DNA from: Obrimoposthia wandeli
Lineage: Eukaryota
Direction of reading: 5' to 3'
Assembly (NCBI GenBank): GCA_977020255.1
Contig: CDROCS010002070.1
Coordinates: 1 to 64,000, forward strand
DNA: 64,000 nt
How positions within the stretch are numbered: the stretch's first letter is position 1; each line of letters begins with the position of its first letter. The notes beneath the pieces were generated by a model. It had not been told where the DNA came from. It saw nothing but the letters and a program-made list of their open reading frames with translations, and ran no database searches. The position numbers were made by a program, and so were the translations under genes. This document shows, piece by piece, positions 41,861-60,878 of the stretch.

Positions 41861-42769
41861 TTACTGTGCCACTTCTTGGTAAACTTTTAAGTCAGTGTGC
41901 AATTCATCTTTCAGCGCACTGAGTTTAAGTGTGCGTATTTTTTTGAATTGATAGACAAACACACCAATGTTAAAGAGAATGCTGATAATACTGATCGTCC
42001 ACATCGCCGCTGGATTATCTGATGATTTAACCGCAAACATCGTGGTATCAACAAATGCAGGAAACGTCATCACAAACATCATCCAGAAACCCAATGTGTG
42101 GGCTCGATGTTGTAACCAAGCGCCTTTTTTGATGAAGAAGGCTGGGATCGTACAAGACAGTAATAAGCATAAACCGGCGTAGAATGAATGGTCTGGTACA
42201 CAGTTATAAACGTAAGCGAAGTTCCAAAGATCATAAGCGATGATCCAGAACCAAAGCATATCTGGCCACACCATATCTTGGTATTTGTCTTTACTAATAT
42301 AAATGCCCACCCAACCACAAATTGTCACGATATTCAAAATACCGGCGATGGCATTCAGGTAATTCCATTGGCCACCAATGATCTCCATACCATCATGCAT
42401 ACCATTGAAACCAGCCGTTTGGAATTCACGCATAACCGCTTCAAAAATATTAAAACCTAAGATGAAGGCAGGGAAAAATAGCAGGTATTTATTCTTTGCA
42501 GCGCCTTTAATGTAACGTAACGCCATAAAGCCAAGGCAACCCGCTAATGCAGAATACGCTTTAACCCATGCAAACCAACTGCCTACCGTTGTGCCTTTAG
42601 CAGCTGTTGTTGGCCATACAAAGAGGGTTAACAGTATTGGTAACACTAAGAAACAAAATCCCGCCGCCCATTTACTACGTCTTGAAATTTCATTAAGCAG
42701 AATTAATGCCAGCGTTACCGTTATCCCAGCTACGACACTATACCAAGGGATTGATTCGAAAAAAAACAT
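41861..42769 (-). CDS. Polytopic membrane protein, DUF5692-like
   Basis: FESIPWYS, WFAWVKAYSALAGC, NIFEAV..EF, DMVWPDMLWFWIIAYDLWNFAYVYNC, WLQHRAHTL; family name from memory; AAGGA RBS. Confidence 0.65.
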   Translation of the reverse strand: MFFFESIPWYSVVAGITVTLALILLNEISRRSKWAAGFCFLVLPILLTLFVWPTTAAKGTTVGSWFAWVKAYSALAGCLGFMALRYIKGAAKNKYLLFFPAFILGFNIFEAVMREFQTAGFNGMHDGMEIIGGQWNYLNAIAGILNIVTICGWVGIYISKDKYQDMVWPDMLWFWIIAYDLWNFAYVYNCVPDHSFYAGLCLLLSCTIPAFFIKKGAWLQHRAHTLGFWMMFVMTFPAFVDTTMFAVKSSDNPAAMWTISIISILFNIGVFVYQFKKIRTLKLSALKDELHTDLKVYQEVAQ

Positions 42770-42866
42770 ACACATTTCCTTTGTTTACCTGAATATAAAA
42801 TGCATCAATTAATGCAAATGAGGGAGCCTACACTGCGGTATTTGTAATCAATTATTAACTTTTACA

Positions 42867-43060: not shown

Positions 43061-43699
43061 ATGGGTTCAGCACTGATGGATTTAAAACAAGCAACAAATC
43101 GTCGAAAGCCAAGTCAGAATCGTAGTAAGGAACGTGTTGCGGTTATTTTAGAAGCTGTGAAGGCGTTGATCGAAGAAAAGGGGATTGCTAACCTAAAAAT
43201 TTCAGAAATCGCGAAACGGGCAAACAGCTCTGAAGGCTCTATTTATCAATATTTTTCAGATAAAGAAACAATCATCCTCTCTTTAGCTGAACACTTTATG
43301 AAAAAGATACATGTTATTGTTGATAAACATATTGATAAGTTAGATAGCTTAGATGACCTCGATATGGTCATGAGCTGTAATTTTGACGATATTTATGCAT
43401 TACATAAAAATGAGTCGGCACTGCGCCAGATTTGGTTTGAATCTGTCGATATCAAATTAATCCATCTGGCGACAGTCGATAGTGAGATGAAAGCCGATAG
43501 GATTTACCAAAGCGTACTTAAATTTGCCACGCCTAAAGATCCTGTACAATTGAAACAATTTATCCTGCTAATGAGTATTCAATTTAGCTCCGTGATCCGC
43601 TTATGTTTTTCCAGTAATGTCGGCACACCCGAACAGCTCAAAAAAATATATGTCGACACAGTGGTTGGCAGTATTACCAAGTACATTGATTTGAATTAA
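43061..43699 (+). CDS. TetR/AcrR-family regulator
   Basis: RRKPSQNRSKER..ILEA..LIEEKG..ISEIAKRA..GSIYQYF.DK; start may be 43076. Confidence 0.92.
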   Translation: MGSALMDLKQATNRRKPSQNRSKERVAVILEAVKALIEEKGIANLKISEIAKRANSSEGSIYQYFSDKETIILSLAEHFMKKIHVIVDKHIDKLDSLDDLDMVMSCNFDDIYALHKNESALRQIWFESVDIKLIHLATVDSEMKADRIYQSVLKFATPKDPVQLKQFILLMSIQFSSVIRLCFSSNVGTPEQLKKIYVDTVVGSITKYIDLN

Positions 43700-43744: not shown

Positions 43745-44374
43745 CTACTCATTAAAACAGATCACTCTATCGCAAACGGCATTGAGCAGATCATCATCAT
43801 GAGAAATGACCAGTAGACCGAGTTGCCGTTGGCCAACTTCCTCGCACAATGCCAGCCAAATATCTCGCTGGGTTAATGGATCTAGCTGCGCAGTGATCTC
43901 ATCACACAGTAAATACTTAGTGGTAGGAGCTAAAGCTCTGACCAAATTGAGTCTTTGTAATTCGCCTCCAGAAAGTTCGCTCGGAAAGCGCTTTAGCCAA
44001 CTGGGATCAATTTTATAGCGTGCTAATTGTTTAGTATCAATAGGATGGCTTTCAGTTAATGATCGCTCTAATGACCAGCGGGGATTAAAGGCAAATTCAG
44101 GCTGTTGGCAGATCCACTGCACACTGTTTGGGCTATGTTTCGTTATTATAGGTTCTATTGCAGGTTCTATCGTTGCTAATTTTAGCTTACATTGTGACTG
44201 TGTCAGCGAGCCTGAATGCAAAGGGTGCATACCCGCAAGTACCATTGCTAGCGTTGATTTTCCACAACCGCTAGGGCCTGTTAGACCGAGTATTTCACCA
44301 CTATGTAATATTAATTTAGGTAACGTAATTAATTGCTTGTCTCTTTTGGCTGTGCCATTAACTAGCTTTAGCAT
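43745..44374 (-). CDS. ABC ATPase (NikE/YntE/DppF-like)
   Basis: GPSGCGKST, LSGGELQR, LLCDE, ISHD; AAGGAG RBS before ATG 44374. Confidence 0.92.
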   Translation of the reverse strand: MLKLVNGTAKRDKQLITLPKLILHSGEILGLTGPSGCGKSTLAMVLAGMHPLHSGSLTQSQCKLKLATIEPAIEPIITKHSPNSVQWICQQPEFAFNPRWSLERSLTESHPIDTKQLARYKIDPSWLKRFPSELSGGELQRLNLVRALAPTTKYLLCDEITAQLDPLTQRDIWLALCEEVGQRQLGLLVISHDDDLLNAVCDRVICFNE

Positions 44375-45098
44375 TACAGCTCCTTGTCCAGTTCGCAGGA
44401 CTCGCATCCCAGAGTGCTTGAGTATAGGCATTGGCGATACCCAGTCTAATCGCTGTGGGGGTGGTATTGTCGACGATATGACCATCCTTTAGCACCAGTA
44501 TTCGATGTGCGACTTGGGTAATGCCTGGCAAATCATGGCTGATGATCATGACGCCTTTTGCTGGATGTATTTTGTCTGGCTGACATAACGCGGCCAGTTC
44601 ACTAAAAACTTTGTTGGAACGGCTTAATTCAAGTCCACAAGTCGGCTCGTCGGCAATGATAAAATCGGTATTTTGTATTAACGCCATTGCCGTGAGCACG
44701 CGTTTAGCCATACCTCCTGAGAGTTGGCTAGGGTAAAGGGTTAATATACTGTCATCTAAACCGACCTTTTGTAACGTAGCGGTTAGCTCTGCTGGTGTAT
44801 TCTGAGATGCATTTGCTTGCTGGATTAATTGTGCACCGACACGTGTACTTGGGTTTAGCGCAGTTGCCGCTTGCGCAACAATGGCAATACTGTTTTTGTT
44901 AGCTGATTTAAATTTAACCGTGCCCTGTAGGTTAAATCCCTGAGGACATGCTCCCAGCAATGCATTTGCAAGAATACTTTTACCACTGCCACTGGCGCCT
45001 ATTATCGCCAAGCATTCACCGCGTTTAACAGTGAAACTGGCATTTTTTAGCAGCTTGTGATGATTATTTTCAATGGTGAGTTGCTCAACGATTAACAT
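44358..45098 (-). CDS. ABC ATPase (NikD/YntD/DppD-like)
   Basis: GASGSGKS, LSGGMAKR, IIADEPT, ISHD. Confidence 0.92.
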   Translation of the reverse strand: MLIVEQLTIENNHHKLLKNASFTVKRGECLAIIGASGSGKSILANALLGACPQGFNLQGTVKFKSANKNSIAIVAQAATALNPSTRVGAQLIQQANASQNTPAELTATLQKVGLDDSILTLYPSQLSGGMAKRVLTAMALIQNTDFIIADEPTCGLELSRSNKVFSELAALCQPDKIHPAKGVMIISHDLPGITQVAHRILVLKDGHIVDNTTPTAIRLGIANAYTQALWDASPANWTRSCNAKAS

Positions 45099-45886
45099 GA
45101 TGATTGGCCCTTTCTAAGTGAGCGAGTGAAGCAAGTTGCATTTTCTGCCAGTAATAATAAGGCCGTGATCAATACCAATCCTGGGAAGAGCGCTAACCAC
45201 CAATTACCGATAATCAAATAGCGACTTGCTTCGGATAATAATATACCCATTGAAGGTTCGTTTGGGTTTAAGCCAAAGCCAAGGAATGTTAATGCCGCTG
45301 CGTGCAGGATCGCGTGAGGTATCAGTAATAACAGACCTGTTAACCATTGTGGTAATAGGTGTGGCACCATGTGCTGTACTAAAACTTGCCAGTAGGGCTT
45401 ACCAAAATTTCTAGCCAATAAGACATAAGGTCGGCGTGTTAGCTGGATCACTTCGGCACGCAATAACCGGGTCAATCGAGGCCAGTGGCTTAACGTAATC
45501 GCAAAAATGACGCCCTGTGAGCTACCTTCTAATGCCAAGGTCAACAAAATCAGTAACAATAAATGTGGTAATGACATCATGGTATCAACCAATAAGTCGA
45601 CAAACCAAGCCAATCGTTGATGCGTACTGGCGATGATTGCGAGGCTAAATGCAATCATCGAACTCATTAATGCGGCAATGCCGCCAACTTGAAGGCTACT
45701 GATAAGTGCTTTCATAGTACGTGAAAATTGGTCTCGTCCAAGCCAGTCAGTACCGAACCAATAAGTGATTGAAGGGGGTTGTAACTTGGCCATTAAATCA
45801 ATATCACTCCCTTGGCTAGGCCAAAAATAAGCGCCAGCAACCAGCAGCAGGAAGCAAATTAAACTTGGGTAGGAGAGATGTTTCAT
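45092..45886 (-). CDS. ABC permease (NikC/YntC/DppC-like)
   Basis: FGTDWLGRD, HWPRLTRLLRAEV, LTFLGFG..PS.G..L. Confidence 0.92.
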   Translation of the reverse strand: MKHLSYPSLICFLLLVAGAYFWPSQGSDIDLMAKLQPPSITYWFGTDWLGRDQFSRTMKALISSLQVGGIAALMSSMIAFSLAIIASTHQRLAWFVDLLVDTMMSLPHLLLLILLTLALEGSSQGVIFAITLSHWPRLTRLLRAEVIQLTRRPYVLLARNFGKPYWQVLVQHMVPHLLPQWLTGLLLLIPHAILHAAALTFLGFGLNPNEPSMGILLSEASRYLIIGNWWLALFPGLVLITALLLLAENATCFTRSLRKGQSSC

Positions 45887-46869
45887 TGCGTTATATCCTG
45901 ACCAGGCAAAAGGGAGTAATGCAGTAAATTAGCGATGCTATTACCCGTAAAAATGAATACCGATGAGATTAAGGTGATGCCCATTAATAAGGCGGTGTCG
46001 CCACTGAGTCCTGCAATCACTAGGGTATTTCCAAGTCCGGGGTAATTAAATACCGTTTCAGCTAATATTGAACCGCCAAATAATTCCGCAAAACTGGCAA
46101 ATTGCAGTACTAAAGCAGGTGTGAGGCTGTTTCTCAATATGTGGTGACGAATAATACCGCAAGTAGATTTACCATGTATGCGGGCATAATTGACATGTTC
46201 ACTGGCTAATACATCCAGTACTTTTTCTTTGGTGTGCAGCACGATGGGCGCTAAACTCGTCGCCGCGAGCGCAATACATGGCAATATCAAGTGCTCTAAA
46301 CGGGTTAACCAAGGTACATTACTTGGATCCATGCCTAATGGAGCAGAACAACAAACAGGTAATACACTCAGCTTGACTGCAAATACATAGATAAGGATTA
46401 AGCCAAGCCAAAAAGAGGGCGTGCTGGCTAATACCCAGGCAAAACGAGTGATCAGCCGATCCCAAATACTGTTTTCTGTTAAGGCTGCAATAAGCCCTAA
46501 AACGTAACCAAAAAACAATGATAATGTCCAACTTGCTGCCATCAATAATAACGATGACGGAAAGCGTTCGATAATAATATTGCTAACGGGTTGTTGAAAT
46601 TTAATCGAAAATCCGAGATCGCCCTGCAGTAAATGTTGACCCCAGATGATGAAGCGTTCAGAAATACTCTGGTCTAAACCTAAATTCTGAGCGAGTAAGA
46701 GCCGTTGTTCATTAGATATTGACATCATTTGATCGCCAATATAATAATTGAGCGGCTCGATAGGTGAAACCGCCAGCAACATGAAGGCGAACAGTGTAAC
46801 CAGTATTAACTGAAGCATCAGTCTCGCTGTCGAGCTGGCAATAATGGTTATTGGCATGTCCATGACCAT
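45883..46869 (-). CDS. ABC permease (NikB/YntB/DppB-like)
   Basis: LGLDQ..QGDLG.S, PSFWLG, HLILP, YARIHG, GSILAETVFNYPGLG. Confidence 0.92.
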   Translation of the reverse strand: MVMDMPITIIASSTARLMLQLILVTLFAFMLLAVSPIEPLNYYIGDQMMSISNEQRLLLAQNLGLDQSISERFIIWGQHLLQGDLGFSIKFQQPVSNIIIERFPSSLLLMAASWTLSLFFGYVLGLIAALTENSIWDRLITRFAWVLASTPSFWLGLILIYVFAVKLSVLPVCCSAPLGMDPSNVPWLTRLEHLILPCIALAATSLAPIVLHTKEKVLDVLASEHVNYARIHGKSTCGIIRHHILRNSLTPALVLQFASFAELFGGSILAETVFNYPGLGNTLVIAGLSGDTALLMGITLISSVFIFTGNSIANLLHYSLLPGQDITQ

Positions 46870-48413
46870 TCAGTAATATTTGCAGTGAGTGGCCAACCAT
46901 GTCCATGAGGTTCTGGTATTGGATCACCAAGATCTAAGCATGAAGACGTAGCGTATAAATGGTCTAAATTGACTAACCAAGTCCAGGGTTGATCTGCCAA
47001 TATTTGCTGTTGAGCCTGTTGCCAAAATGGCAAAGATGCTTCCCAAGACGGGGCATTACTTGCTTGTTCAAGCGCGCGATCAACGAGCTTACTTTTATAG
47101 AAGCCAGTGTTAAAGAAATCGACACCAGCAAAGTCACTGTGATAGACAAAGCGAACTTCTTTTGCTGAGTGGCTACCAAAGCCCATTAATACTGGATTCT
47201 CATGCATTTTTGTCGCAATGAAATCCCAGCTACCAGCAAGTAATTCAATATTAATACCTAAGGGTTTAACCATATCAGCGGCGACAATTGATAATTGTTC
47301 ACGGACGCTATCGCCAGATTTGTATAATAGGGTCATGTTGGCTTCATGGCCATTTTTGTCGATAATGCCATTACCATTGGTATCTGCCCAGCCAGCATCA
47401 CTGAGTATTTTCCGCGCGGCATGAAGGTCTGCACCATTTAGTAAGTTTTGCTCTGCTGGACCCCAAGGCATACCATCAGCAATGGAGTGGGCTGGGCGGC
47501 CATAACCGTTTAATACGCCATTGACCAACAGATCACGATCCATTGCTAGGTTGATTGCTTGTCTAATCGCAAGATCTTGGCTGACGTTGTTGCCATTTAT
47601 TTGTTGATTATCTGTTTTGTTTGGTTTGTTTACTGGCCAAGAAATGCCTCGATTATCAACACTGTCAATTTTCCATAACGCGAGAGGTGGGGTGATCACC
47701 GCTGAAAATCGCTGAGGAATAGCGGCAAGTTGTAATTGACCGGACTTGAGTAAGGCTAACTTGCTGTCTTCATCGGTGAACACAATTAAGATATCTTTAA
47801 ATTGTGGTTTTTGTGCGTAATAGAACGGATTTGCGGTCACGAGTAGTTGCTGACCCTTGTCCCAACGTTTGAAAATATACGGACCAGAACCGATTGGATG
47901 CTGACCATAATTTTCGTCATAACCGTCTTTTGGTACGATACCAAGTGACGTTAGCTCATCGATGAAAGTGATGTCAGGTTGCTTTAGCACAAATTGGATC
48001 TTGCTTGAATCTAGTACTTTAATGTTAACTAGGTTATTTAAATCATGAGTCGTGGCCGCATTCTTTGCGGTCAGATAGGTAAAAGCGATATCTGATGTGG
48101 TGAGATCGACGCCATTACTAAATTTTATATTCGGTTTTAATTCAATGGTCCAGGTTAAGCGGTCGCTTGAAAGTGTCCAGTTTGCAGCAAGGTCTCCACT
48201 GAGTGCTAATTCTTTATTTCGGCGGATCAATGTCGATTGAAATAAAGGATCACCATAACGCCCCCAGCCATAAATAGGATTAAACCCAGCATCCGGCTCA
48301 TTGCCTAAAGATATAATCAACTGTTTCGGTGTGGCCGCGTAAGACTCTGAAACTAAGATTGTCAATGGTGCTGTAATGGCAACCGTTGCTAATAATAAAG
48401 ATGATAATTTCAT
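46848..48413 (-). CDS. Family-5 solute-binding protein, YntA/NikZ-like (probable nickel binding)
   Basis: EPDAGFNP..GW, IGSGPY, R.AIN.A.DR, C-terminal EPHGHGW His motif; divergent from hypB. Confidence 0.8.
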   Translation of the reverse strand: MKLSSLLLATVAITAPLTILVSESYAATPKQLIISLGNEPDAGFNPIYGWGRYGDPLFQSTLIRRNKELALSGDLAANWTLSSDRLTWTIELKPNIKFSNGVDLTTSDIAFTYLTAKNAATTHDLNNLVNIKVLDSSKIQFVLKQPDITFIDELTSLGIVPKDGYDENYGQHPIGSGPYIFKRWDKGQQLLVTANPFYYAQKPQFKDILIVFTDEDSKLALLKSGQLQLAAIPQRFSAVITPPLALWKIDSVDNRGISWPVNKPNKTDNQQINGNNVSQDLAIRQAINLAMDRDLLVNGVLNGYGRPAHSIADGMPWGPAEQNLLNGADLHAARKILSDAGWADTNGNGIIDKNGHEANMTLLYKSGDSVREQLSIVAADMVKPLGINIELLAGSWDFIATKMHENPVLMGFGSHSAKEVRFVYHSDFAGVDFFNTGFYKSKLVDRALEQASNAPSWEASLPFWQQAQQQILADQPWTWLVNLDHLYATSSCLDLGDPIPEPHGHGWPLTANITEWSWTCQ

Positions 48414-48667
48414 TTTTATGATCCTTTATACATTTAGAGTAATCATACTAATATTAAATTCGTGGCCTTCAAAGATAAAAAAGTGTTAAACATCACAGTT
48501 TTATAAAACAGTATTTAAAGGTTAATTTTCATGATCGATGAAACAGCATATTTCACATTTTCCTTACCAAATAAACGTTTTGGTAACATGGGATAGCGTA
48601 TTTGTGACAAGTCGTATCATCCCATGTCTCTGTCATTATCTCCGTTCTTTCTCCTCGTTTAGGTTTC

Positions 48668-48696
48668 ATACATAACAATATTTTAATGTTATGTAT
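48668..48696. promoter_or_regulatory. Perfect 10-bp inverted repeat (operator candidate) between ABC importer and hypB operon
   Basis: ATACATAACA-N9-TGTTATGTAT. Confidence 0.6.
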
Positions 48697-48874
48697 TGAT
48701 TTAAAAATTAAAAAATACGATCAACTTCAAATTAATAGAGTAATTACTCCAAAGTATGACCTACGTCTTAGTAGGTAGTTTGAAGTAAGGGTAATATGGC
48801 CGCATAAAATTTTTAATTATTGATAGGGCAAGAGGAAAAACCTCCCCCGAATTTCATAACAGAGGTGAAAAATC

Positions 48875-49546
48875 ATGAAAAACTTTAAAATTCTTGAGAT
48901 TAAAGAAGGTATATTCGACAACAATAACAAGGAAGCAGACTTGTTAAGAGCTGAATTAAAACAGCAAAATAATTTGTTAATAAATCTGATGTCTTCTCCG
49001 GGTTCAGGTAAGACGACGACGCTGGTAAGCACAATTAATGCGTTAAAAGACGAAATGAAAATCGGTGTTATGGAAGCGGATATCGACTCTGATGTTGATG
49101 CTCACACTATCGCCAATACTGGCACAAAAGTAATCCAACTACATACTGGTGGCATGTGTCATCTTGATGCTGAGATGACGAAACAAGGTCTAGAGGGGTT
49201 AGGTTCAGAAGGTCTTGATTTAACCATTCTTGAAAATGTAGGTAATTTAGTGTGTCCAGCTGAGTTTGATACCGGTGCAGCAAAAAATGTCATGATTTTA
49301 AGTGTGCCAGAAGGTGATGACAAGCCACTTAAATACCCTCTAATGTTCTCTATTTGTGATGTATTACTGATTAATAAAATTGATGCCATGGGGTTCTTTG
49401 ATTTTGATTTAGAAGCCGCGACAACGCGTGTAAAAAAATTAAATCCAAATATTAAAGTTTTTCCTATCTCTGCTAAAACTGGCGAAGGCGTTGAAGCTTG
49501 GACTAACTGGCTTCGTGGTGCAGTGAAAGATTGGCAAGAATCATAA
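48875..49546 (+). CDS. hypB: Nickel-insertion GTPase HypB (short form, no N-terminal His-rich region)
   Basis: SSPGSGKTT, TGGMCHL, ENVGNLVCPAEFDTG, SVPEGDDKPLKYP, NKID. Confidence 0.95.
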   Translation: MKNFKILEIKEGIFDNNNKEADLLRAELKQQNNLLINLMSSPGSGKTTTLVSTINALKDEMKIGVMEADIDSDVDAHTIANTGTKVIQLHTGGMCHLDAEMTKQGLEGLGSEGLDLTILENVGNLVCPAEFDTGAAKNVMILSVPEGDDKPLKYPLMFSICDVLLINKIDAMGFFDFDLEAATTRVKKLNPNIKVFPISAKTGEGVEAWTNWLRGAVKDWQES

Positions 49547-49582
49547 AAATTATAAAAATAGAGTTTTAGCTTTGGAGGCAAT

Positions 49583-52273
49583 GTGGAAAATAAAGATAAG
49601 GTCTTAGATCTTGCGAACAAGATCAGTCGGGTGAAGCGAGGATCAAAAGCAGGCATTACGTTTGATGATCCTGAGTATAAAATTTATAGCCCTTGGATGT
49701 CGGAAGATGTAGCAGAGGTTACCCTTTGCTTGAAACTGCGTGAAAAAATGAGTGCTGCAGAAGTTGCTGCTGTTTGCGGCAGACCTGAAAAAGAAGTTGC
49801 TGAACTGCTATGGGAATCTGCAGTAGGCGGCGCAGCCTTTATCAATAATGTTGACGGTGTGGACCAATACTGGATCGATATCTGGGTGCCAGGCCACATG
49901 GAAATGGTTGTTAACAATAAAGAACTTATTCAAAAGTATCCTGAACTAGGCGCTGCGTTTGATGCATTCGGTAAGAAAAAAGGCCCACTATGCGCAGGTA
50001 ACATCCCTGTTGGTAAAGGCCCTATGCGTGTGATCCCAATCCAAACTGCGATTGATGGTGATACGAGAACGGCTTCTTATGAAGAAGTGTCTAAATACCT
50101 TGATGATAATGAAGTGTTCTCTCTTTCTGATTGTGCTTGCCGTACATCTCGCGAAGCGATGGATGAAGGTTGCGGCCATTTGAAAGAAGATATCTGTATT
50201 CAGATGGGACATGCTGCGGAATACTATATCCGTACCGGTCGTGGTCGCGCTATCAGCCGTGATGAAGCGATGGTCGTGATCCAAAAAGCCGAAGATAACG
50301 GCTTGATGCACAGCATTCCCAACTTAGATGGTTCAGGTAAAACCCATGCGATCTGTAACTGTTGTGGTTGTGGTTGTTTTGCGATGAGACTTGCAGAGCA
50401 GTGGCAAAACCCGGATATGGTTCGTTCGAACTATACGGTTAAAATTGACTTAGATAAATGTGTTGCTTGTGGCGAATGTGTTGAAACATGTCCGACGAAT
50501 GCATTGAAGTTGGGTCAGAAATTATGCAGCAAAGTACCTGAACCAGTAATAGAGCGTGAACTTCCGCATAATACCGAATGGGGCGAAGATAAGTACAACC
50601 CGGATTACCGTGAAAATAAACAAGTTGTTATGGAAGGCGGTACAGCACCTTGTAAAGCGGGCTGTCCGGCACATATCGGTGTTCAAGGTTATATCAAACT
50701 TGCGTCGCAAGGCAATTACGAAGAAGCACTAAAACTGATTAAAATGGAAAATCCATTCCCAGCCGTGTGCGGCCGTATCTGTCCAAAATTCTGTGAAGAT
50801 GACTGTACCCGTTGTGATCTTGATGGTGCGGTTGCTGTCGATGATATTAAAAAATTCATTGCACAAAAAGAAATGGACGCGGATACACGTTTTATCCCGA
50901 CAATTAAATATGATTACGACCAGAAAATTGCGGTTATCGGTGGTGGTCCAGCCGGTCTTTCTTGTGCTTACTATTTGGCTGTTGAAGGCTACAAAGTAAC
51001 GGTATTTGAAAAGCAAACAGCACTGGGTGGTATGTTAACACTCGGTATCCCATCTTATCGACTAGAAAAAGATGTGATTAACGCAGAAATCGATGTGCTA
51101 AGAGAATTGGGCGTTGAGTTTAAAACCGGCATTGAAATCGGTAAAGACATCACACTTGCTGAGCTGAGAAAACAAGATTTCCAAGCTTTCTACATGGCAA
51201 TTGGTGCGCAAGCTGGTCGTCCGTTAGGACTTGAAGGTGAAGATGCGCAAGGTGTTGTGACTGGCGTTGAGTTCTTACGTCAAGTTAACCTGGGTGAAAA
51301 CAGTGAACTTGAAGGCAAAGTAATTGTTATCGGTGGTGGTAATGTTGCCATTGACGTAGCAAGAACGGCAACTCGAGTTGGTGCTGCACAAGTGGACATG
51401 TTCTGTCTTGAAAGCCGCGAAAAAATGCCTGCACACGCAGAGGAAGTTCAAGAAGCGTTAGATGAAGATATCAACGTTAACAATTCTTGGGGTCCAAAAC
51501 GTATCGTGACTGAAGACGGCAAAGTCGTTGGTGTTGAATTCAGAAAATGTCTTTCTGTCATCGATGCAAATGGCAGATTTAACCCGAGCTATGACGAAAA
51601 TAATACTAAGATCGTTGATGCTGACCATGTATTGCTTTCAGTTGGCCAAGCAATTGCTTGGGGCAACATTCTTGAAAACAGTAACATCGAGTTGAATCCT
51701 AACCAAACAATCCCAGCAGACGCAGCAACTTATCAAACTGATGAGCCAGATGTATTTGCCGGCGGTGACGTGGTAACTGGCCCTCGGTTTGCCATTGATG
51801 CGATTGCAGCAGGTAAAGAAGGTGCTATTTCTATTCACCGTTATGTTCAAAATGGTCAAAGTTTGGTACTTGGTCGTATTAAACGCGATTACCGTGCGTT
51901 TGATAAAACCAACATTAATCTTGATGGATATGATAGCGCGCCTAGACAGCAAATTGCCCATGTTGACGGTAAAGCGTCGAAACAAACATTCCGCGATCTA
52001 CGTGAGACATTCACAGAAGAGCAAGTTCGGATAGAAACTCAGCGTTGCCTCGGTTGCGGTGTGGCTGTTGCCGACGAATTTATGTGTATCGGCTGTGGTT
52101 CTTGTACAACGAAATGTAGATTCGATGCTATCTCTCTTGTTAAAACACACAACGCTGAGGGTTCCGACCTGAAAGAAGTGAAGAAGATCATTATCAAGCA
52201 TGCGTTAAAACGTAAATTAAGAATTGCGGTAAACAAACCGATCAAAAAAATTAAATCGTTAATAAAAATATAA
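49583..52273 (+). CDS. Multi-domain Fe-S flavoprotein, paralog 1 (Cys/His-rich N-domain, ferredoxin, GltD-like module, C-terminal ferredoxin)
   Basis: CACR..GCGH..C, HAICNCCGCGC, CVACGECVETCP, APCKAGCP..CGRICPKFCEDDC, GGGPAG, GGGNVA, RCLGCG..CIGCGSCTTKC; GTG start after GGAGG. Confidence 0.85.
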   Translation: MENKDKVLDLANKISRVKRGSKAGITFDDPEYKIYSPWMSEDVAEVTLCLKLREKMSAAEVAAVCGRPEKEVAELLWESAVGGAAFINNVDGVDQYWIDIWVPGHMEMVVNNKELIQKYPELGAAFDAFGKKKGPLCAGNIPVGKGPMRVIPIQTAIDGDTRTASYEEVSKYLDDNEVFSLSDCACRTSREAMDEGCGHLKEDICIQMGHAAEYYIRTGRGRAISRDEAMVVIQKAEDNGLMHSIPNLDGSGKTHAICNCCGCGCFAMRLAEQWQNPDMVRSNYTVKIDLDKCVACGECVETCPTNALKLGQKLCSKVPEPVIERELPHNTEWGEDKYNPDYRENKQVVMEGGTAPCKAGCPAHIGVQGYIKLASQGNYEEALKLIKMENPFPAVCGRICPKFCEDDCTRCDLDGAVAVDDIKKFIAQKEMDADTRFIPTIKYDYDQKIAVIGGGPAGLSCAYYLAVEGYKVTVFEKQTALGGMLTLGIPSYRLEKDVINAEIDVLRELGVEFKTGIEIGKDITLAELRKQDFQAFYMAIGAQAGRPLGLEGEDAQGVVTGVEFLRQVNLGENSELEGKVIVIGGGNVAIDVARTATRVGAAQVDMFCLESREKMPAHAEEVQEALDEDINVNNSWGPKRIVTEDGKVVGVEFRKCLSVIDANGRFNPSYDENNTKIVDADHVLLSVGQAIAWGNILENSNIELNPNQTIPADAATYQTDEPDVFAGGDVVTGPRFAIDAIAAGKEGAISIHRYVQNGQSLVLGRIKRDYRAFDKTNINLDGYDSAPRQQIAHVDGKASKQTFRDLRETFTEEQVRIETQRCLGCGVAVADEFMCIGCGSCTTKCRFDAISLVKTHNAEGSDLKEVKKIIIKHALKRKLRIAVNKPIKKIKSLIKI

Positions 52274-52341
52274 GACATGAAGTGATAATAATATTATAAA
52301 ACAGTTATTTAAATATTTTTTGATTGATTTATAAGTACATC

Positions 52342-52373
52342 AAAAGGCGGGGGATATCAGTTCTTCGCCTTTT
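52342..52373 (+). terminator. Terminator-like hairpin between paralog 1 and hypA
   Basis: AAAAGGCG..CGCCTTTT. Confidence 0.5.
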
Positions 52374-52398
52374 CAATTAAATTAATAAGGAGGTTGTT

Positions 52399-52740
52399 AT
52401 GCATGAATTAGGTGTTGTCTTTGAAGTTATCAAAACCGTTAAAAACTTTGTCGATAAAAATGACTTAACAAAAGTTGATACAATCGTACTACAAATAGGT
52501 GAACTATCATCCATGATCCCGAAATACATTCACGAGTGTTTCCCTGCCGCTATTGATGGTACAGAGTTTGAAGAGACAAAATTGGTGATTGAAATTATAC
52601 CCGCTGCCGCTATCTGTAAAGGGTGTAAGCATGTTTTTAATATCATTAAGCATAAATCTCAATGTCCAGAATGTGAAAGCCTGGAGTGGGGAATGTTAAC
52701 CGGTAAAGAGTTCTCGATAAAAGAAGTTATTGCTTGTTAA
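52399..52740 (+). CDS. hypA: Nickel metallochaperone HypA
   Basis: MHE N-terminus, IGELS, CKGC and CPEC zinc finger, GKEFSIKEV. Confidence 0.95.
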   Translation: MHELGVVFEVIKTVKNFVDKNDLTKVDTIVLQIGELSSMIPKYIHECFPAAIDGTEFEETKLVIEIIPAAAICKGCKHVFNIIKHKSQCPECESLEWGMLTGKEFSIKEVIAC

Positions 52741-53058
52741 TGCGTAACGGCAGTTGATTTATGACTGCCTTGCCTAAAAGTGAATGAATCCTCGCTACAT
52801 TAATGCTGACACTGCATATTACACTGCCAGTATGAAGAGATAATCATCTGTTTCTTTATGCCAAAATCGATCAAATTAACCACGTTTAACCATAAATTCC
52901 GTCCATCTAAACATTCAGAAATTAGCATGTTGGCGCTAACTATTAATACGTAACACATTGTTTTTTTTAGCTTAGCGTGATTCAGATCTGATCATTAATA
53001 CCAAAGATAAGTATAATAACCCTTCATTTTGTAAGTGAATTTTATTTAAAAGAAAAGC

Positions 53059-53156
53059 CTTATTCCTATTGATACCCATGGTCATTTAGCTGAGCTCTTG
53101 ATTAGCACTCTTAATTAGCAGTCTGAATCGCTATGGGTATGAATAGGTGAAATAAG
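53059..53156. ncRNA. Candidate structured RNA (long imperfect hairpin) upstream of paralog 2
   Basis: CTTATT/AATAAG, CCTATT/AATAGG, ATACCCAT/ATGGGTAT nested arms; loop holds tandem CTCTT[G/A]ATTAGCA. Confidence 0.4.
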
Positions 53157-53256
53157 CGCCTCCTTAACTGTGTCTGATGGTTATGCATTGAAAATGCTGT
53201 TAAGTAACTAATTTAAAAAGAATAATAATTAGTATTTAAACTTTGGAGTTAATGTC

Positions 53257-55944
53257 ATGGTAAAACAGAAAGTATTAGATTTGGCCAATTTGATCAGTAA
53301 GACGAAACGTGGTGCTAAAGATGAAATCAGGCCAGAGCATCCGGAATATAAAGTGTTAGAGCCCGTCGTCACCGATGAAATGGCAGAAGTGGCGTTGTGC
53401 CTCAAATTCCGTGAGGGGATGACGGTAGAAGAGGTTGTTCCTCTGTGTGGTAAATCGCCAGAAAGAACCAAAGAACTATTGTGGGAACTGGCTATGGTCG
53501 GAGCCACTGTGATGGGTGAACAAGAGGGTGTCGACAAATTTTGGTACGAGATCTGGGTTCCCGGCCACATGGAGTTACTGGTCAATCATAAAGAGAATGC
53601 GCTTAAATATCCGCAACTGGGTAAAGCATTTGATGATTATGGCAGAAAAAAAGGTCCGCTTGCGGTGGGTAACTTCCCGATAGGCACAGGTCCTATGCGA
53701 GTAATACCAATCGAATCTGCAATTTCGGGTGAATCTAGACGTGTATCGAATGATGAAATTTCTAAATACTTAAATGATAACGATCGATTCTCGGTATCTG
53801 ATTGCTCTTGCCGTGCAGCCCGAGAAGCGCTAAATGAAGGTTGTGGTCACCTTAAAGAAGATATGTGTATTCAATTAGGCCATGCTGCGGAATATTATAT
53901 TCGTACTGGTCGTGGTCGAGAAATCAACCGTGAAGAAGCATTTGAAATTATTCAAAAAGCCGAAGACAACGGTTTAATGCATAACATGCCGAATGTTGAC
54001 GGACCTGGACACACTCACGCGATCTGCAATTGTTGCGGTTGTGGCTGCCTGGCTTTAAGAAACGCCAATATGTTAACCAACCACGATTTTGTGCGTTCTA
54101 ACTATACTGTGAAAATCGATGAAGATAAGTGTGTTGCTTGTGGTGAATGTGTTGAAGTGTGTCCAACTAACGCATTGAAACTAGGGCAAAAGCTGTGTAA
54201 AAATACACCTATCCCTAAGGTTAATCGTGATCTTCCTTTTAATACCGAATGGACGCCAGATCGATGGAATGAAGATTACCGTATCAACAGAGAAGTTGTT
54301 ATGAAAGAGGGGACTGCACCTTGTAAAGCGGGCTGCCCAGCGCATATCGGTGTGCAAGGTTATATCAAGTTGGCGTCGCAAGGTAAGTATGCTGAAGCAC
54401 TAAAACTGATTAAGTTAGAGAATCCATTCCCTGCAGTATGCGGACGTATTTGTCCAAAATTCTGTGAAGATGATTGTACCCGTTGTGATATAGATGGTGC
54501 GGTTGCTGTTGATGATATCAAGAAATTCATTGCACAGCAGGATATGAATGCAGAAACGCGCTATGTGCCAACGATTAAAAATGATTACGATAAAAAAATT
54601 GCCGTTATCGGTGCAGGTCCTGCTGGTTTATCTTGTGCTTATTACTTGGCTGTACAAGGTTACAAAGTCACTGTGTTTGAAAAACAAAAAGTATTGGGCG
54701 GTATGTTAACACTGGGTATTCCTTCTTACCGCCTTGAAAAAGATGTTATCAACGCCGAAATCGATGTATTGAAAGACATGGGTGTTGAATTTAAAACGGG
54801 CGTTGAAATTGGTAAAGATGTCAGCCTTAGTGATCTTAGAACACAGGATTACAAAGCATTCTATATGGCTATCGGTGCTCAGGCTGGTCGTTCGCTTGGA
54901 CTTGAAGGTGAAGATGCTAAAGGTGTTATCACCGGTGTTGAATTTTTACGTCATGTTAATTTAGGCGAACACTCGGAATTTGCAGGTAACGTGATTGTCA
55001 TCGGTGGTGGTAATGTTGCTATTGATGTAGCAAGAACCGCAACCCGAGTTGGCGCTGCACAAGTGGATATGTATTGCCTTGAAAGTCGTAAAAAAATGCC
55101 TGCACACGCAGAGGAAGTTGAAGAAGCGTTAGATGAAGATATAAACATTAATAATTCTTGGGGGCCAAAACGCATCGTCGCTGAAAATGGTAAAGTCGTG
55201 GGTGTAGAATTCAGGAAATGTATTGCTGTATTTGACGCAGATGGCAAATTTAACCCGAGCTATGACGAGAACGATACTAAGATTGTTCTTGCTGACCATG
55301 TATTACTTTCAGTGGGCCAAGCGATGGATTGGGGTAGTATTCTTGCAGACAGCAACGTTGTATTGAATCCTAACCAGACTATTCAAGCTGATGCTGATAC
55401 TTTCCAGACGGGTGAACCGGATATTTTCGCTGGCGGTGACGCATTAACAGGTCCTCGTTTTGCCATTGACGCGATTGCGCACGGTAAAGAAGGGTCTATT
55501 TCTATTCATCGTTTTGTTCAGCGTGGTCAAAGTTTGGTGTTAGGTCGCCTAAAACGTGATTACCGTGCATTTGATAAAGCCAATGTTAATCTTGCTGGTT
55601 ATGATACTGCACCAAGACAACAAACGGAGCATGTCGATGGTAAAAAATCAAAACAAACCTTTAAGGATCTTCGTGAAACATTTACCGAAGAACAAGTTAA
55701 GAAAGAGTCGGAACGTTGCCTAGGTTGTGGTGTAGTCATTGCCGATGAATACACGTGTATTGGTTGTGGTGCCTGTACTACCAAGTGTAAATTTGATGCA
55801 ATAACCCTAATCAGAACCTACGATGCTGATGCGGTAGAGTTTAAAGATCTGAGATCTACGGTCATTAAACACGCGCTAAAACGTAAGGTGCGAGTTGCGG
55901 TCAATAAACCAATTAAAAAGATTAAAGCAATTTTTTCCAACTAA
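53257..55944 (+). CDS. Multi-domain Fe-S flavoprotein, paralog 2
   Basis: Colinear with 49583..52273 and shares all Cys motifs; GAGPAG, GGGNVA. Confidence 0.87.
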   Translation: MVKQKVLDLANLISKTKRGAKDEIRPEHPEYKVLEPVVTDEMAEVALCLKFREGMTVEEVVPLCGKSPERTKELLWELAMVGATVMGEQEGVDKFWYEIWVPGHMELLVNHKENALKYPQLGKAFDDYGRKKGPLAVGNFPIGTGPMRVIPIESAISGESRRVSNDEISKYLNDNDRFSVSDCSCRAAREALNEGCGHLKEDMCIQLGHAAEYYIRTGRGREINREEAFEIIQKAEDNGLMHNMPNVDGPGHTHAICNCCGCGCLALRNANMLTNHDFVRSNYTVKIDEDKCVACGECVEVCPTNALKLGQKLCKNTPIPKVNRDLPFNTEWTPDRWNEDYRINREVVMKEGTAPCKAGCPAHIGVQGYIKLASQGKYAEALKLIKLENPFPAVCGRICPKFCEDDCTRCDIDGAVAVDDIKKFIAQQDMNAETRYVPTIKNDYDKKIAVIGAGPAGLSCAYYLAVQGYKVTVFEKQKVLGGMLTLGIPSYRLEKDVINAEIDVLKDMGVEFKTGVEIGKDVSLSDLRTQDYKAFYMAIGAQAGRSLGLEGEDAKGVITGVEFLRHVNLGEHSEFAGNVIVIGGGNVAIDVARTATRVGAAQVDMYCLESRKKMPAHAEEVEEALDEDININNSWGPKRIVAENGKVVGVEFRKCIAVFDADGKFNPSYDENDTKIVLADHVLLSVGQAMDWGSILADSNVVLNPNQTIQADADTFQTGEPDIFAGGDALTGPRFAIDAIAHGKEGSISIHRFVQRGQSLVLGRLKRDYRAFDKANVNLAGYDTAPRQQTEHVDGKKSKQTFKDLRETFTEEQVKKESERCLGCGVVIADEYTCIGCGACTTKCKFDAITLIRTYDADAVEFKDLRSTVIKHALKRKVRVAVNKPIKKIKAIFSN

Positions 55945-55980
55945 GCCGTAAAGTCGATACTATAAAAAAACTATGATATG

Positions 55981-56017
55981 AAAAGGGCTGGGAATATAAA
56001 TTCTCAGCCTCTTTTTT
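55981..56017 (+). terminator. Intrinsic terminator
   Basis: AAAAGGGCTGGGAA..TTCTCAGCCTCTTTTTT. Confidence 0.75.
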
Positions 56018-56250
56018 ACCATTATCACTTATACCTATAAAGAGGTGATTGAAAGAGGTTGTGGACAGACTCTTTACAGAGCGGTATCTTATCTAATACA
56101 AAGAAATCACAAAATAAGTGATAAAAGGATGAAGCCAAGGTTTTTAACCACAGGCTTTACAAGAATGACAGACGACTTAATAACCGGGTGATTGTTCGAA
56201 AAAATACCCTGCTTATAATTTTGGGTAAGAATTTAAAGGGAAGTTTATAT

Positions 56251-59200
56251 ATGATGAGCAGAAATACTAAGCATCACGGTCTCTATCGTTCAGAGTTTGA
56301 ACACGATAGCTGTGGTATCGGCTTTGTTACCAATCTAAAAGGTAAAAAGTCGCACGATATTATTCAGAATGCACTTACTATGCTGGAATGCATGGAACAC
56401 CGAGGCGGTACTGGCTTTGATGTTAAAAGTGGTGATGGTGCAGGAATATTGATCCAGATCCCGCATGATTTTTTCAAAGCAGAAGCCAGTGAACTTGGCT
56501 TCCAGTTACCTTCTGAAGGCGAATACGGCGTTGGGATGATCTTTTTCCCTAACGATCCCGAGCAAGCGGAGAAAAGCCGTGAGGTTTTTAATGCTGCTAT
56601 TGAAGAACTGGGTTTAAGCATACTGGCTTATCGTTCGGTACCAACGGATAATTCGATGTTGGGGGTAGCCTCGTTTGACTCTGAGCCTCAGATTGAACAG
56701 GTATTTATCCAAAAACCAACTGATCTTACCCAGCAGGTTTTTGAACGTAAGTTATTTGTGTTACGTAAATACACGTCACACAAGCTTAACAGAACCATCG
56801 CTAAAGAAACCGATGAGTTTTATATCGCTTCTATGTCCTCGCGTACCATAGTGTATAAAGGGCAATTCACCACCGCGCAGGTGAAACAATACTACCTCGA
56901 TTTGCAAAATGAACGCGTGACGACTGGCCTCGCCATGTTCCACTCCCGCTTTTCAACCAATACATTCCCGGCATGGCGTCGAGCACAACCGTTCCGCTAT
57001 TTATCTCACAACGGTGAAATTAATACCGTTCAGGGCAATGTCAATTGGATGAACGCGCGCGAAGCGATGTTTAAATCGATAAACTTCAGTGACGCCGAAC
57101 TGAAAATGATCAACCCGGTATGTAACCGTGGTAATTCAGATTCTGCAAACCTTGATATGGCGATTGAGCTGCTTGTGCTCAGCGGACGTCCACTGGCTCA
57201 GGTCATGATGATGATGGTGCCGGAAGCATGGCAATCTCAGGAAGACATGGATCCGGTTAAGCGTGCTTTTTATGAGTATTACGCCTGCATCATGGAACCA
57301 TGGGATGGCCCGGCTTCTATTTCGTTCACCGATGGCAAAATGATTGGCGCCACACTCGACCGTAACGGTTTACGTCCTTCGCGTTACTTGCTCACCAATG
57401 ATGGCACGTTGATCATGGGTTCTGAAACGGGCACCATCTGTATCGATCAATCGACTGTCGTAGAAAAAGGTCGCTTGCAACCGGGCAAGATCTTTATTGC
57501 CGATTTGGAACAAGGCCGCATTATCAGTGATGATGAGGTTAAAAATGGTATTTGCTCTGCACAACCGTATGAACGATGGCTGAGCGAAAACAAAATACTG
57601 TTGAACGAACTGCCAACGCCAGCAGCATCTGTCACTCAAGCTGAGTTGCCAAACCTGAGAAAAATTCAAAAAGCGTTTGGCTACAGCAGTGAAGATCTTA
57701 ACCTGATTTTGGCGCAAATGGTCGACAGCAGCAAAGAGCCGCTTGGTGCTATGGGTACAGATACACCGTTAGCGGTACTTTCCGATCGCCCGCAGCAGCT
57801 ATCTCACTATTTTAAACAGTTGTTTGCTCAGGTAACTAATCCGCCGATAGATCCGATCCGAGAAGAGTTGGTGATGTCTTTGCGTGGTTATGTCGGTAAC
57901 TCGCACAACTTATTGACAGAGACGCCTGCGCATTGTCACAAGATTGAAATTGACCAGCCAGTGCTGACCAATGAAGAATTTAAAAAACTGCAGCAAATTG
58001 ACCATAATCATCTGCAGTCTAAAACGATTGATATTACCTTTAGAGCGACAGGCAAAGAAGGGGCACTGAAGGCCGCACTTGATCGTATCTGTTTGTATGC
58101 CAAAGATGCGGTTAACAATGGTTATGCGTTGTTGCTATTGAGTGACCGTAATATCGACACCGATCATGCGGCGATACCGTCGGTACTGGCGACTGCAGCG
58201 ATCCATCATTATTTGATCCGCGAAGGTTTACGTGCCAAAGCTGACCTTATCCTCGAAGTTGCCGATATTCGTGAAACGCATCACTTTGCTACTGTGTTAG
58301 GTTTTGGCGCTGCAGCGGTTAACCCTTATTTGGCGCTTGAAAGTTTGTATAGTTTGCGTGATGACGGCGTTATTAATCCTAAATTCAGTAATGACGTTGT
58401 TGTTGCTAAGTATATCAAAGCCGTTGGTAGTGGTTTGTTGAAGATCTTCTCGAAAATGGGGATTTCAACATTACAGTCTTACCAGGGTGCTCAGATATTT
58501 GAAGCGCTGGGTATTAACAGTGATGTTATTGATAATTACTTCACCGGTACGGTAAGCCGCATCGAAGGTATTGGCCTAGATCAAATCGCAACAGAGGCGT
58601 TAATGCGCCACCGTGACGGTTTCTTGCCTGAAGACCGTATTGCCGCTGATGATCTGTTGAAGACTGGTGGCGAATACGCTTGGCGTCATGATGGGGAAAA
58701 ACACCTGTTTAACCCAACTACTATTCGCTTGCTGCAGCATTCTACAGCGAGTAACAATACTGAACAGTTTAAAGAATATGCGAAAGTCGTTGATACACAG
58801 AGTAAAGATGCATTTACTTTACGTGGTTTGCTCGAATTTAGTGCGGACCACAAATCTATCCCATTAGATGAAGTAGAGCCGATCGAAAATATTTTCAAAC
58901 GTTTTGCTTCTGGTGCTATGTCCTTTGGTTCTATTTCTTGGGAAGCGCACACTACGCTCGCCATTGCTATGAATCGTATTGGCGGTAGAAGTAACAGTGG
59001 TGAGGGCGGTGAAGATCCGATTCGCTTTAAGCCGATGGAAAATGGCGATTCGATGAAGTCGCGGATCAAGCAGGTTGCTTCTGGTCGTTTTGGGGTAACC
59101 AGTCATTACCTGACGAATGCAGACGAATTACAAATTAAAATGGCGCAAGGTGCCAAGCCGGGCGAGGGTGGCCAATTACCTGGACATAAGGTTGATGCCT

Positions 59201-60858: not shown

Positions 60859-60878
60859 GCTGAATAGGAGACAATATT

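Follow-up and report, generated by a model that had tools for sequence, protein, structure and literature searches.

The locus and its two flavoproteins

We analyzed a 64,000-nt stretch of DNA (positions 1 to 64,000 of contig CDROCS010002070.1, assembly GCA_977020255.1, deposited under Obrimoposthia wandeli), hereafter the window, which encodes two paralogous iron-sulfur (Fe-S) flavoproteins that we call A and B. The gene for HypB, a nickel-inserting GTPase, ends 37 nt before the start of A, and the gene for HypA, a nickel metallochaperone, lies between A and B (Table 1). Our subject is the N-terminal domain (N-domain, residues 1-286) that precedes the recognizable ferredoxin and flavoprotein modules. 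For this domain we observed a distinctive architecture, deep conservation of Cys and His ligands, no matching known fold for its Cys-rich part, and genomic linkage to nickel chaperone genes. We interpret its Cys-rich core as the probable nickel-containing Fe-S active site of a reductase related to IsrA.

A is 95% identical to a protein from a Moritella dasanensis MAG (a genome assembled from metagenomic data). A and B are 74% identical across 891 residues. A FastTree tree placed B as the sister of the Moritella-type A clade, and therefore indicates that B arose by a lineage-specific duplication. Pfam and NCBIfam searches gave both paralogs the same layout, in which the N-domain is followed by Fer4, Fer4_20, an FAD/NAD(P) module (FAD, flavin adenine dinucleotide), and a C-terminal Fer4. 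The Pyr_redox_2 region of A carries two dinucleotide-binding motifs of the GxGxxG type (GGGPAG and GGGNVA), as in modules of the GltD/NfnB type, and the best whole-protein model for A is PRK12771, which spans residues 335-859.

A sequence-only reading of this DNA had drawn attention to the N-domain as a candidate metal site, quoting a series of motifs shared by the two paralogs. After re-translating the coordinates we recovered every quoted motif at equivalent positions in A and B. The same reading had counted one full CxxCxxCxxxCP motif in the central ferredoxin; there is exactly one, and the second CxxCxxCxxxC is C-terminal. The two N-domains have in common 11 Cys (49, 65, 184, 186, 197, 205, 258, 260, 261, 263, and 265 in A numbering) and five His (105, 199, 210, 243, and 255). 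Nine N-domain Cys are packed into 84 residues, and Cys makes up 3.7% of the whole protein.

By BLAST, the C-terminal Cys tail of A aligns to the dicluster ferredoxin of a shorter, standalone relative. We considered and rejected the idea that insertion of the GltD module had split a dicluster ferredoxin in two: the alignment of the tail takes in the entire dicluster domain, with part of it deleted, and the PRK12771 model already covers the C-terminal tail.

Table 1. Coordinates of the genes, domains, and motifs discussed in the text. Positions are those of the window; residue numbers are those of A unless B is named; aa, amino acids; ORF, open reading frame; ABC, ATP-binding cassette; pLDDT, predicted local distance difference test.
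Feature	Positions	Strand	Residues and details	Basis
DUF5692 membrane protein	41861..42775	-	about 6 hydrophobic segments	Pfam E 2e-133; hydropathy
TetR-family regulator	43061..43699	+		Pfam TetR_N
Five-gene Nik/Opp-type ABC importer, divergent from hypB	43745..48413	-		NCBIfam
hypB, directly upstream of A	48875..49546	+		TIGR00073, 246 bits (cutoff 121)
Paralog A, IsrA-like Fe-S flavoprotein	49583..52273	+	896 aa	ORF; Pfam and NCBIfam domains
Predicted winged-helix subdomain of A	49592..49882	+	~4-100	AlphaFold2, pLDDT 92-99
Predicted Cys-rich alpha/beta core of A, candidate Ni/Fe-S site	49883..50440	+	101-286	
WVPGHME motif			starts at A 101, B 100	
RVIP motif			starts at A 149, B 148	
SDC[A/S]CR motif (SDCACR in A)	50126..50143	+	starts at A 182, B 181; C184 and C186 (superfamily-invariant CxC), R187	
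GCGHLKED[I/M]CIQ.GHAAEYY motif			starts at A 196, B 195	
GCGHLKEDICIQ	50168..50203	+	C197 and H199 (accessory, co-varying), C205 (superfamily-invariant)	
H..PN.DG.G.THAICNCCGCGC motif			starts at A 243, B 242	
H243	50309..50311	+	sole superfamily-conserved His	
ICNCCGCGC	50351..50377	+	C258, C260, C265 superfamily-invariant; C261, C263 accessory	
Fer4			286-309	Pfam/NCBIfam
CxxCxxCxxxCP, sole complete ferredoxin motif of the central region	50459..50494	+	293-304 (C293, C296, C299, C303)	
Fer4_20, GltD/DPD two-cluster domain	50639..50878	+	353-432; six invariant Cys (357, 361, 396, 400, 404, 408)	PF14691 E 2.6e-21
Pyr_redox_2, FAD/NAD(P)H-binding	50924..51814	+	448-744	PF07992 E 3.2e-30
C-terminal CxxC and CxxCxxCxxxC	52046..52117	+	822, 825 and 835-845; all Cys invariant	
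Fer4_7, weak			835-861	Pfam/NCBIfam
hypA, between A and B	52399..52740	+		Pfam HypA E 3.8e-29
Paralog B	53257..55944	+	895 aa; N-domain 53257-54111	motifs as in A

Fold of the N-domain

We modeled residues 1-345 of A with AlphaFold2 from 75 aligned sequences (mean pLDDT 81.8, predicted template modeling score 0.80). Most of residues 1-285 had pLDDT values above 90. Residues 291-315 were poorly predicted, as would be expected if the ferredoxin motif there depends on a partner located elsewhere in the protein.

Residues ~4-100 are predicted to form a winged helix, with a three-helix bundle and a beta-hairpin wing. VIA-align matched this part of the model to TFE-alpha (1q1h) with Z 7.1 and a root-mean-square deviation of 2.7 Å over 78 residues, and to dozens of other winged-helix proteins with Z 5.6-7. 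The top Foldseek matches for the N-domain were weak and likewise winged-helix proteins, and homologs gave weak Pfam matches to TrmB, DUF7342, and HTH_20. A helix-turn-helix-like segment that the sequence-only reading had placed near residues 50-80 falls within this subdomain.

The rest of the N-domain resembled nothing in the collections we searched. Modeled alone, the core (pLDDT 76.8) formed an alpha/beta domain of ~190 residues with the conserved Cys at strand ends. When residues 100-290 were compared with 48,161 chains by VIA-align, the best Z was 2.5 and none reached 5, and Foldseek found no match to them at E ≤ 0.001; searching both programs with the whole N-domain returned winged-helix matches for residues 4-140 alone. 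Pfam and NCBIfam gave no family match for residues 1-285, and sequence and profile searches of the PDB with the N-domain gave no match. The 2x[4Fe-4S] ferredoxin fold (two CxxCxxCxxxCP motifs in a (beta-alpha-beta)2 domain of ~55 residues) was absent from the core both as a motif and as a fold match, and the [NiFe]-hydrogenase large subunit, Ni-CO dehydrogenase, and acetyl-CoA synthase gave no match by Pfam, NCBIfam, PDB sequence, or fold. Structure prediction with fold search had been the check proposed by the sequence-only reading, which expected the core not to model as an ordinary ferredoxin or a structural Zn fold, and the outcome agreed. The core is thus not an ordinary ferredoxin or any Zn fold already known; the absence of a match does not prove the fold new.

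Conserved ligands of the Cys-rich core

More than 6,000 proteins were recovered in a word search with residues 1-290. The 120 top-ranking ones were all 891-935 aa long with the same Pfam set, and their N-domains were 67-95% identical to that of A; they came from Moritella, Shewanella, Vibrio, Clostridia, Spirochaetes, Bacteroidales, and Mycoplasmatota. Across the family the core domain occurs in two architectures, one fused (~900 aa, as in A and B) and one standalone (~330-390 aa, in which a complete dicluster ferredoxin follows the winged helix and the core). In both, the core is always followed by ferredoxin motifs.

We evaluated ligand conservation at two depths. Among 242 homologs spanning 38-95% identity, nine Cys (C184, C186, C197, C205, C258, C260, C261, C263, and C265) and two His (H199 and H243) were conserved in at least 98%, and a 75-row alignment yielded the same set. 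The sequence-only reading had counted at least nine Cys and five His as conserved in both paralogs; of the residues that A and B share, C49, C65, H105, H210, and H255 are just 64-80% conserved in the 242 homologs and are substituted in divergent members. H243 was present in 98% of the 242 homologs, in 100% of all long members, and in 83-87% of standalone members. At greater depth, a profile of the core (residues 100-290) searched against 1.84 billion representatives matched 2,479 clusters at E ≤ 1e-3, with 1,373 of them reaching E ≤ 1e-10. In 90 full-coverage representatives from this search C184, C186, C205, H243, C258, C260, and C265 were invariant, and R187, E237, G240, and N259 were likewise well conserved across the superfamily.

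The remaining four positions behave differently. Positions 197, 199, 261, and 263 co-vary as a block, reading CHCC in the clade of A and B. Most standalone proteins have C[KRAY]CC, and other lineages of the fused form show CDNN, SEAG, SDAG, or TDND. Within the ICNCCGCGC run, positions 262 and 264 are occupied by G, S, or A.

The fused proteins contain exactly 16 further invariant Cys (293, 296, 299, 303, 357, 361, 396, 400, 404, 408, 822, 825, 835, 838, 841, and 845), a number that suffices for four standard [4Fe-4S] clusters. Since these 16 residues would fill the four standard clusters, the N-domain would be the only non-canonical site in the protein.

Relation to IsrA and clade 9

IsrA is a putative isoprene reductase of 901 aa from Acetobacterium wieringae ISORED-2 (Kronen et al., 2023; PMC10134865). 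Isoprene induces it together with two HypA and HypB, and its host is without [NiFe]-hydrogenase and hypCDEF (Kronen et al., 2023). The same authors defined clade 9 as the full-length IsrA homologs, which occur in many phyla, and reported that the N-terminal ~270 residues of IsrA have no predictable domain (Kronen et al., 2023). They described four canonical [4Fe-4S] clusters and, as a proposed nickel site, a "cluster V" of six Cys that includes two CxC motifs; their model has a predicted tunnel ending at this Cys6 cluster V, and the cluster-chain spacing comes from the same model (Kronen et al., 2023). Among 988 homologs, the co-occurrence values were 0.73 for HypA, 0.56 for HypB, 0.4 for DUF5692, and 0.21 for TetR, and electron bifurcation was raised as a possibility (Kronen et al., 2023).

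A and B can be assigned by sequence to these IsrA-like clade-9 oxidoreductases (Kronen et al., 2023). Both have the layout of ~900 aa with an unannotated N-terminus of ~270-285 aa, and hypA and hypB lie within a few genes. The Cys6 positions of IsrA (C180/C182 and C254/C256) have their counterparts in C184-x-C186 and C258-x-C260, which are invariant together with C205 and C265. We compared A with IsrA through the published description and through a clade-9 homolog from an A. woodii MAG (L072), to which A is 60% identical over 881 aa. The locus of that homolog (L072, 3549-11303) encodes TetR, MCRA (of the oleate hydratase family), hypB, X, and hypA, and fits the published description of clade-9 loci.

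The idea of a nickel site at the Cys6 positions was therefore already proposed by Kronen et al. (2023), and the sequence-only reading, sound in its main idea, was not new in this respect. What our analysis adds is the tiered map of ligands, the co-varying accessory block, the standalone forms linked to hypA/hypB, the negative fold searches, and the Moritella locus itself.

Linkage to nickel chaperone genes across genomes

Loci of Clostridium and Spirochaetes carry an identical hypB-X-hypA cassette. Both hypA and hypB were found at 51 of 68 well-flanked genome loci, in the order hypB-X-hypA at 44, while nine of the 68 had neither. A Nik-like transporter upstream of hypB, as in the window, also occurs at a Clostridium minihomine locus (L080). 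All-against-all clustering of neighboring genes showed DUF5692 to be the commonest after hypA/hypB (43 of 81 loci), with GntR/FCD (FadR_C-like) regulators in 20 of 81 and a flavin amine-oxidase-like gene in 11 of 81.

Comparison of Moritella with Clostridia, Spirochaetes, or Hahella (L001, L005-L008) gave identities of 73-77% for HypB and 67-71% for the enzyme. These values are unusually high across phyla and suggest horizontal transfer of the cassette as a unit. The enzyme gene is found in tandem elsewhere too: Clostridium sp. Marseille-P2415 has three copies with two hypA (L064, 8001-17026), and a Clostridium MAG has two (L011, 4250-10646). Expansion of paralogs around one chaperone set thus recurs.

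The linkage extends to divergent relatives. Divergent fused proteins at three loci (L085, 6001-10469; L087; L088) are ~910-945 aa long, and in the first of these two consecutive cobW/HypB-like genes precede hypA. All three of the fused members examined that are without C261, C263, and H199 (P0282 with SEAG, P0273 with TDND, and P0305 with YDQR) have hypA adjacent, which led us to reject the accessory block as the determinant of chaperone linkage. We also asked whether any N-domain residues are confined to fused proteins and could account for their hypA/hypB linkage, and found none; the conserved set is equal in fused and standalone proteins.

Two standalone proteins that were looked up singly had no hyp genes nearby. 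In a metagenome scan of 80 standalone-type loci, five had hypA and/or hypB directly beside the gene (L095, 6956-8410; L096; L113; L123, 16-3674; and L128, 240-2615), one of them (L123) with two tandem standalone copies. These Hyp-linked proteins, of ~350-370 aa, comprise the winged helix, the Cys-rich core, and a dicluster ferredoxin, with no flavoprotein module. They belong to at least three or four lineages with 33-55% mutual identity. All five loci keep the core of six Cys and H243, and position 199 varies (A, Y, or Q). At L095, the one long locus of the set, the ORFs that we scanned, up to ~4 kb from the gene, included no hydrogenase. As nothing but the winged helix, the core, and an ordinary ferredoxin makes up the standalone proteins, the nickel-chaperone link follows the N-domain and not the flavoprotein module.

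Proposed mechanism and alternative explanations

We infer the nickel occupancy, the cluster type, the electron path, and the substrate in the following scheme. Residues 1-286 would comprise a winged helix followed by an unclassified alpha/beta Cys-rich core, which would hold the substrate-reducing metal center of an IsrA-like, NAD(P)H-dependent reductase. Electrons would pass from NAD(P)H to FAD, to the two [4Fe-4S] clusters of Fer4_20, on to two [4Fe-4S] clusters built from the Cys motifs at 293-303 and 822-845, and in the last step from these ferredoxin-type clusters to the N-domain site. The ligands of that site would be C184, C186, C205, C258, C260, C265, and probably H243, extended in the clade of A and B by C197, H199, C261, and C263. 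The center would be a nickel-containing cluster based on Fe-S, its nickel imported by the adjoining Nik-type transporter and inserted by the HypB GTPase and the HypA chaperone. By analogy with IsrA of Acetobacterium wieringae, the only member with a physiological link, the chemistry may be hydrogenation of an unactivated C=C bond in a small hydrophobic molecule.

We give this explanation as a whole, that the N-domain core is the nickel-containing Fe-S active site of an IsrA-like reductase, a probability of roughly 0.6. It retains the central claim of the sequence-only reading, that an NAD(P)H/FAD/Fe-S relay feeds a special metal center in the N-domain, and it is favored by the invariant ligands, the lack of a known fold, the position as sole non-canonical site, and the adjacent hypA and hypB. 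Of the ligands shared by the paralogs, three of the five named His and two Cys (C49 and C65) drop out as not conserved. Several observations weigh against this explanation. The literature holds no metal analysis for any member of the family, and preprints from 2026 still call IsrA putative. The isoprene link comes from proteomics and reverse-transcription PCR in another organism, and IsrA is 47-49% identical to the Acetobacterium homologs. The NCBIfam scores of the importer fall far under the nickel equivalog cutoffs, and the details of cluster sites in apo AlphaFold models are not reliable. At 75 of the 80 standalone loci, which carry the Cys6/His core, no hypA or hypB is nearby; the core may work without nickel, or the chaperones may be encoded elsewhere in those organisms.

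This last observation, together with the missing nickel measurement in the literature, is also what speaks for an N-domain that binds Fe-S alone, either as a [4Fe-4S] cluster with extra ligands or as a six-Cys [8Fe-xS] cluster like the double-cubane or P-cluster. Double-cubane and P-type clusters are ligated by six Cys, the number that is invariant here, as was also pointed out by Kronen et al. (2023). The cluster would then be catalytic or the last relay, and HypA and HypB would serve another client or deliver another metal. We regard this as unlikely, if worth keeping in mind, because hypB-X-hypA forms a tight three-gene cassette across phyla, hypA and hypB adjoin standalone forms too, and no gene for a classical client was seen, neither a hydrogenase nor a urease in the window nor a hydrogenase among the ORFs scanned around L095. 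In addition, hypA and hypB are co-induced with IsrA in a host where [NiFe]-hydrogenase and hypCDEF are absent (Kronen et al., 2023). A more improbable proposal turns on the accessory residues C197, H199, C261, and C263, which are fixed within the close family, change together (CHCC versus CDNN, SEAG, SDAG, and others), and form a Cys-small-Cys motif around position 262 (G, S, or A). They could make up a Cys3His nickel site with a Cys-Gly-Cys motif resembling that of the distal nickel in acetyl-CoA synthase, leaving the six universal Cys to an ordinary Fe-S cluster. With P0282, P0273, and P0305 lacking the block yet keeping hypA adjacent, and with A, Y, or Q at position 199 in the Hyp-linked standalone proteins, we give this proposal very little weight.

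The winged helix raises yet another option, that the N-domain, combining a winged helix with a redox- or metal-sensing Cys cluster, serves in regulation or docking, and that the chemistry takes place at the FAD of an NfnB/GltD-like, possibly bifurcating, oxidoreductase. Many metal-sensing repressors have a winged helix of this kind, one source annotates a homolog (P0220) as an Lrp-type regulator, and the remainder of the protein is close to GltD/NfnB-type modules; bifurcation is the possibility raised by Kronen et al. (2023). A sensor of this type is improbable in our judgment, although slightly less so than the accessory nickel site. Invariance of six Cys, one His, R187, E237, and N259 throughout ~2,500 clusters in a 190-residue alpha/beta core typifies a cofactor or active site, the ferredoxin motifs that always follow the core wire it into the electron chain, and dedicated metal chaperones would be unusual for a mere sensor.

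A broader proposal can be made, though only tentatively, and we would rate it at somewhat under even odds. The winged-helix and Cys-rich module may represent a new class of catalytic nickel-iron-sulfur site, and with it another class of nickel enzyme, matured by HypA and HypB without HypCDEF, that hydrogenates unactivated C=C bonds with electrons from NAD(P)H, both when fused to a GltD-like reductase and as a standalone catalytic unit with a ferredoxin tail. In Moritella, the Ni importer, the DUF5692 membrane protein, and the two diverged paralogs would then make up a dedicated system that reduces unsaturated lipids or hydrocarbons in cold marine sediments. As to substrates, it is speculation that the TetR, GntR-FCD, MCRA, and DUF5692 neighbors point toward lipids or other hydrophobic molecules, and MCRA at L072 with the GntR/FCD regulators gives a hint of unsaturated fatty acids for some members.

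Other features of the locus

The chaperones encoded beside A and B retain their characteristic motifs. HypB keeps the P-loop and the GGMCH and VCP metal motifs, and HypA keeps its MHE N-terminus and two CxxC Zn motifs; by their profile scores both are true members of their families. The best NCBIfam matches of the five importer genes are nickel NikA, Opp2B, Opp2C, NikD, and NikE. The two importer ATPase ORFs (43745-44485 and 44358-45098, both on the minus strand) overlap by 128 nt as listed, and the downstream ORF probably has its real start further inside.

Between the nikA-like gene and hypB, a divergent region of 460 bp contains a near-perfect palindrome (48668-48696) with 13-nt arms and a 3-nt spacer (ATACATAACAATA / TAATGTTATGTAT), a candidate operator for the TetR regulator or for a nickel-responsive regulator. 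An Rfam search of 48300-56300 found no credible riboswitch or RNA element. The DUF5692 protein, which may be a substrate channel or transporter, had no sequence relative in the PDB, and we found no literature on it beyond Kronen et al. (2023); together with the TetR regulator it probably belongs to the same system as A and B. Downstream of B, a strong terminator-like hairpin (55985-56010) is followed by a canonical gltB-gltD pair (56188-62369).

Near-identical DNA to 48875-52740 is present in food, ice, seawater, and marine metagenomes. One metatranscriptome of marine sediment (run X20) contains contigs of a related strain that are 90-99% alike over hypB and most of A. These contigs hint at expression, with DNA carry-over being possible.

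Comparison with known systems

About nine classes of nickel enzymes are known, and the biological hydrogenation of unactivated alkenes is poorly understood. If our explanation is true, the core would define a further widespread class, as more than 6,000 close homologs and ~2,500 clusters (at 50% identity) carry the domain. The Moritella locus is a handy test case, being from a culturable, facultatively anaerobic organism and holding the importer, chaperones, regulator, and two paralogs together. The conservation data rank residues for mutation, with C184, C186, C205, H243, C258, C260, and C265 as the core set and C197, H199, C261, and C263 as the accessory set. The standalone proteins linked to hypA/hypB, at ~360 residues, are minimal candidate nickel clients for spectroscopy.

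Two nickel sites invite comparison with the core. The A-cluster of acetyl-CoA synthase involves six Cys, including a Cys-Gly-Cys motif at which the distal nickel is bound, and the C-cluster of Ni-CO dehydrogenase has five Cys and one His. The likeness of A and B to these clusters (six Cys and one His, CxC, and C-C-[G/S/A]-C) is one of ligand count only, and neither enzyme has sequence or fold similarity to A and B. Both enzymes use ATPases of the CooC/AcsF type and are not known to use HypA and HypB. The resemblance of the Cys6 site to the A-cluster was noted by Kronen et al. (2023).

Double-cubane [8Fe-9S] proteins and the nitrogenase P-cluster share with A and B the six-Cys coordination, with no fold or sequence match. 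Systems of this type reduce small unsaturated molecules such as acetylene (cited in Kronen et al., 2023). They do so with an ATP-dependent reductase and no nickel chaperones, whereas A and B would rely on NAD(P)H and FAD. The classical clients of HypA and HypB, the [NiFe]-hydrogenase large subunit and urease, resemble A and B in that hypA and hypB adjoin the presumed client. At the locus of A and B, however, there is no such domain and no hypCDEF, and the presumed client is an Fe-S flavoprotein. Flavoproteins of the NfnB, GltD, and DPD domain II type, in turn, are without the 286-residue winged-helix/Cys-rich module and have no link to nickel chaperones.

The closest known system is IsrA with the rest of clade 9, which A and B resemble in their length of ~900 aa, the unannotated N-terminus with CxC motifs, the domain order, the adjacent hypA and hypB, and the TetR and DUF5692 neighbors. 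The isr operon has an extra N-domain ferredoxin gene and a second hypA, neither of which is present at the A and B locus. Unlike IsrA, A and B are two tandem paralogs that share one hypB and one hypA and have a Nik-type importer attached. Their hosts differ as well, since IsrA comes from a strict anaerobe of the Firmicutes and A and B from Moritella, a marine gammaproteobacterium.

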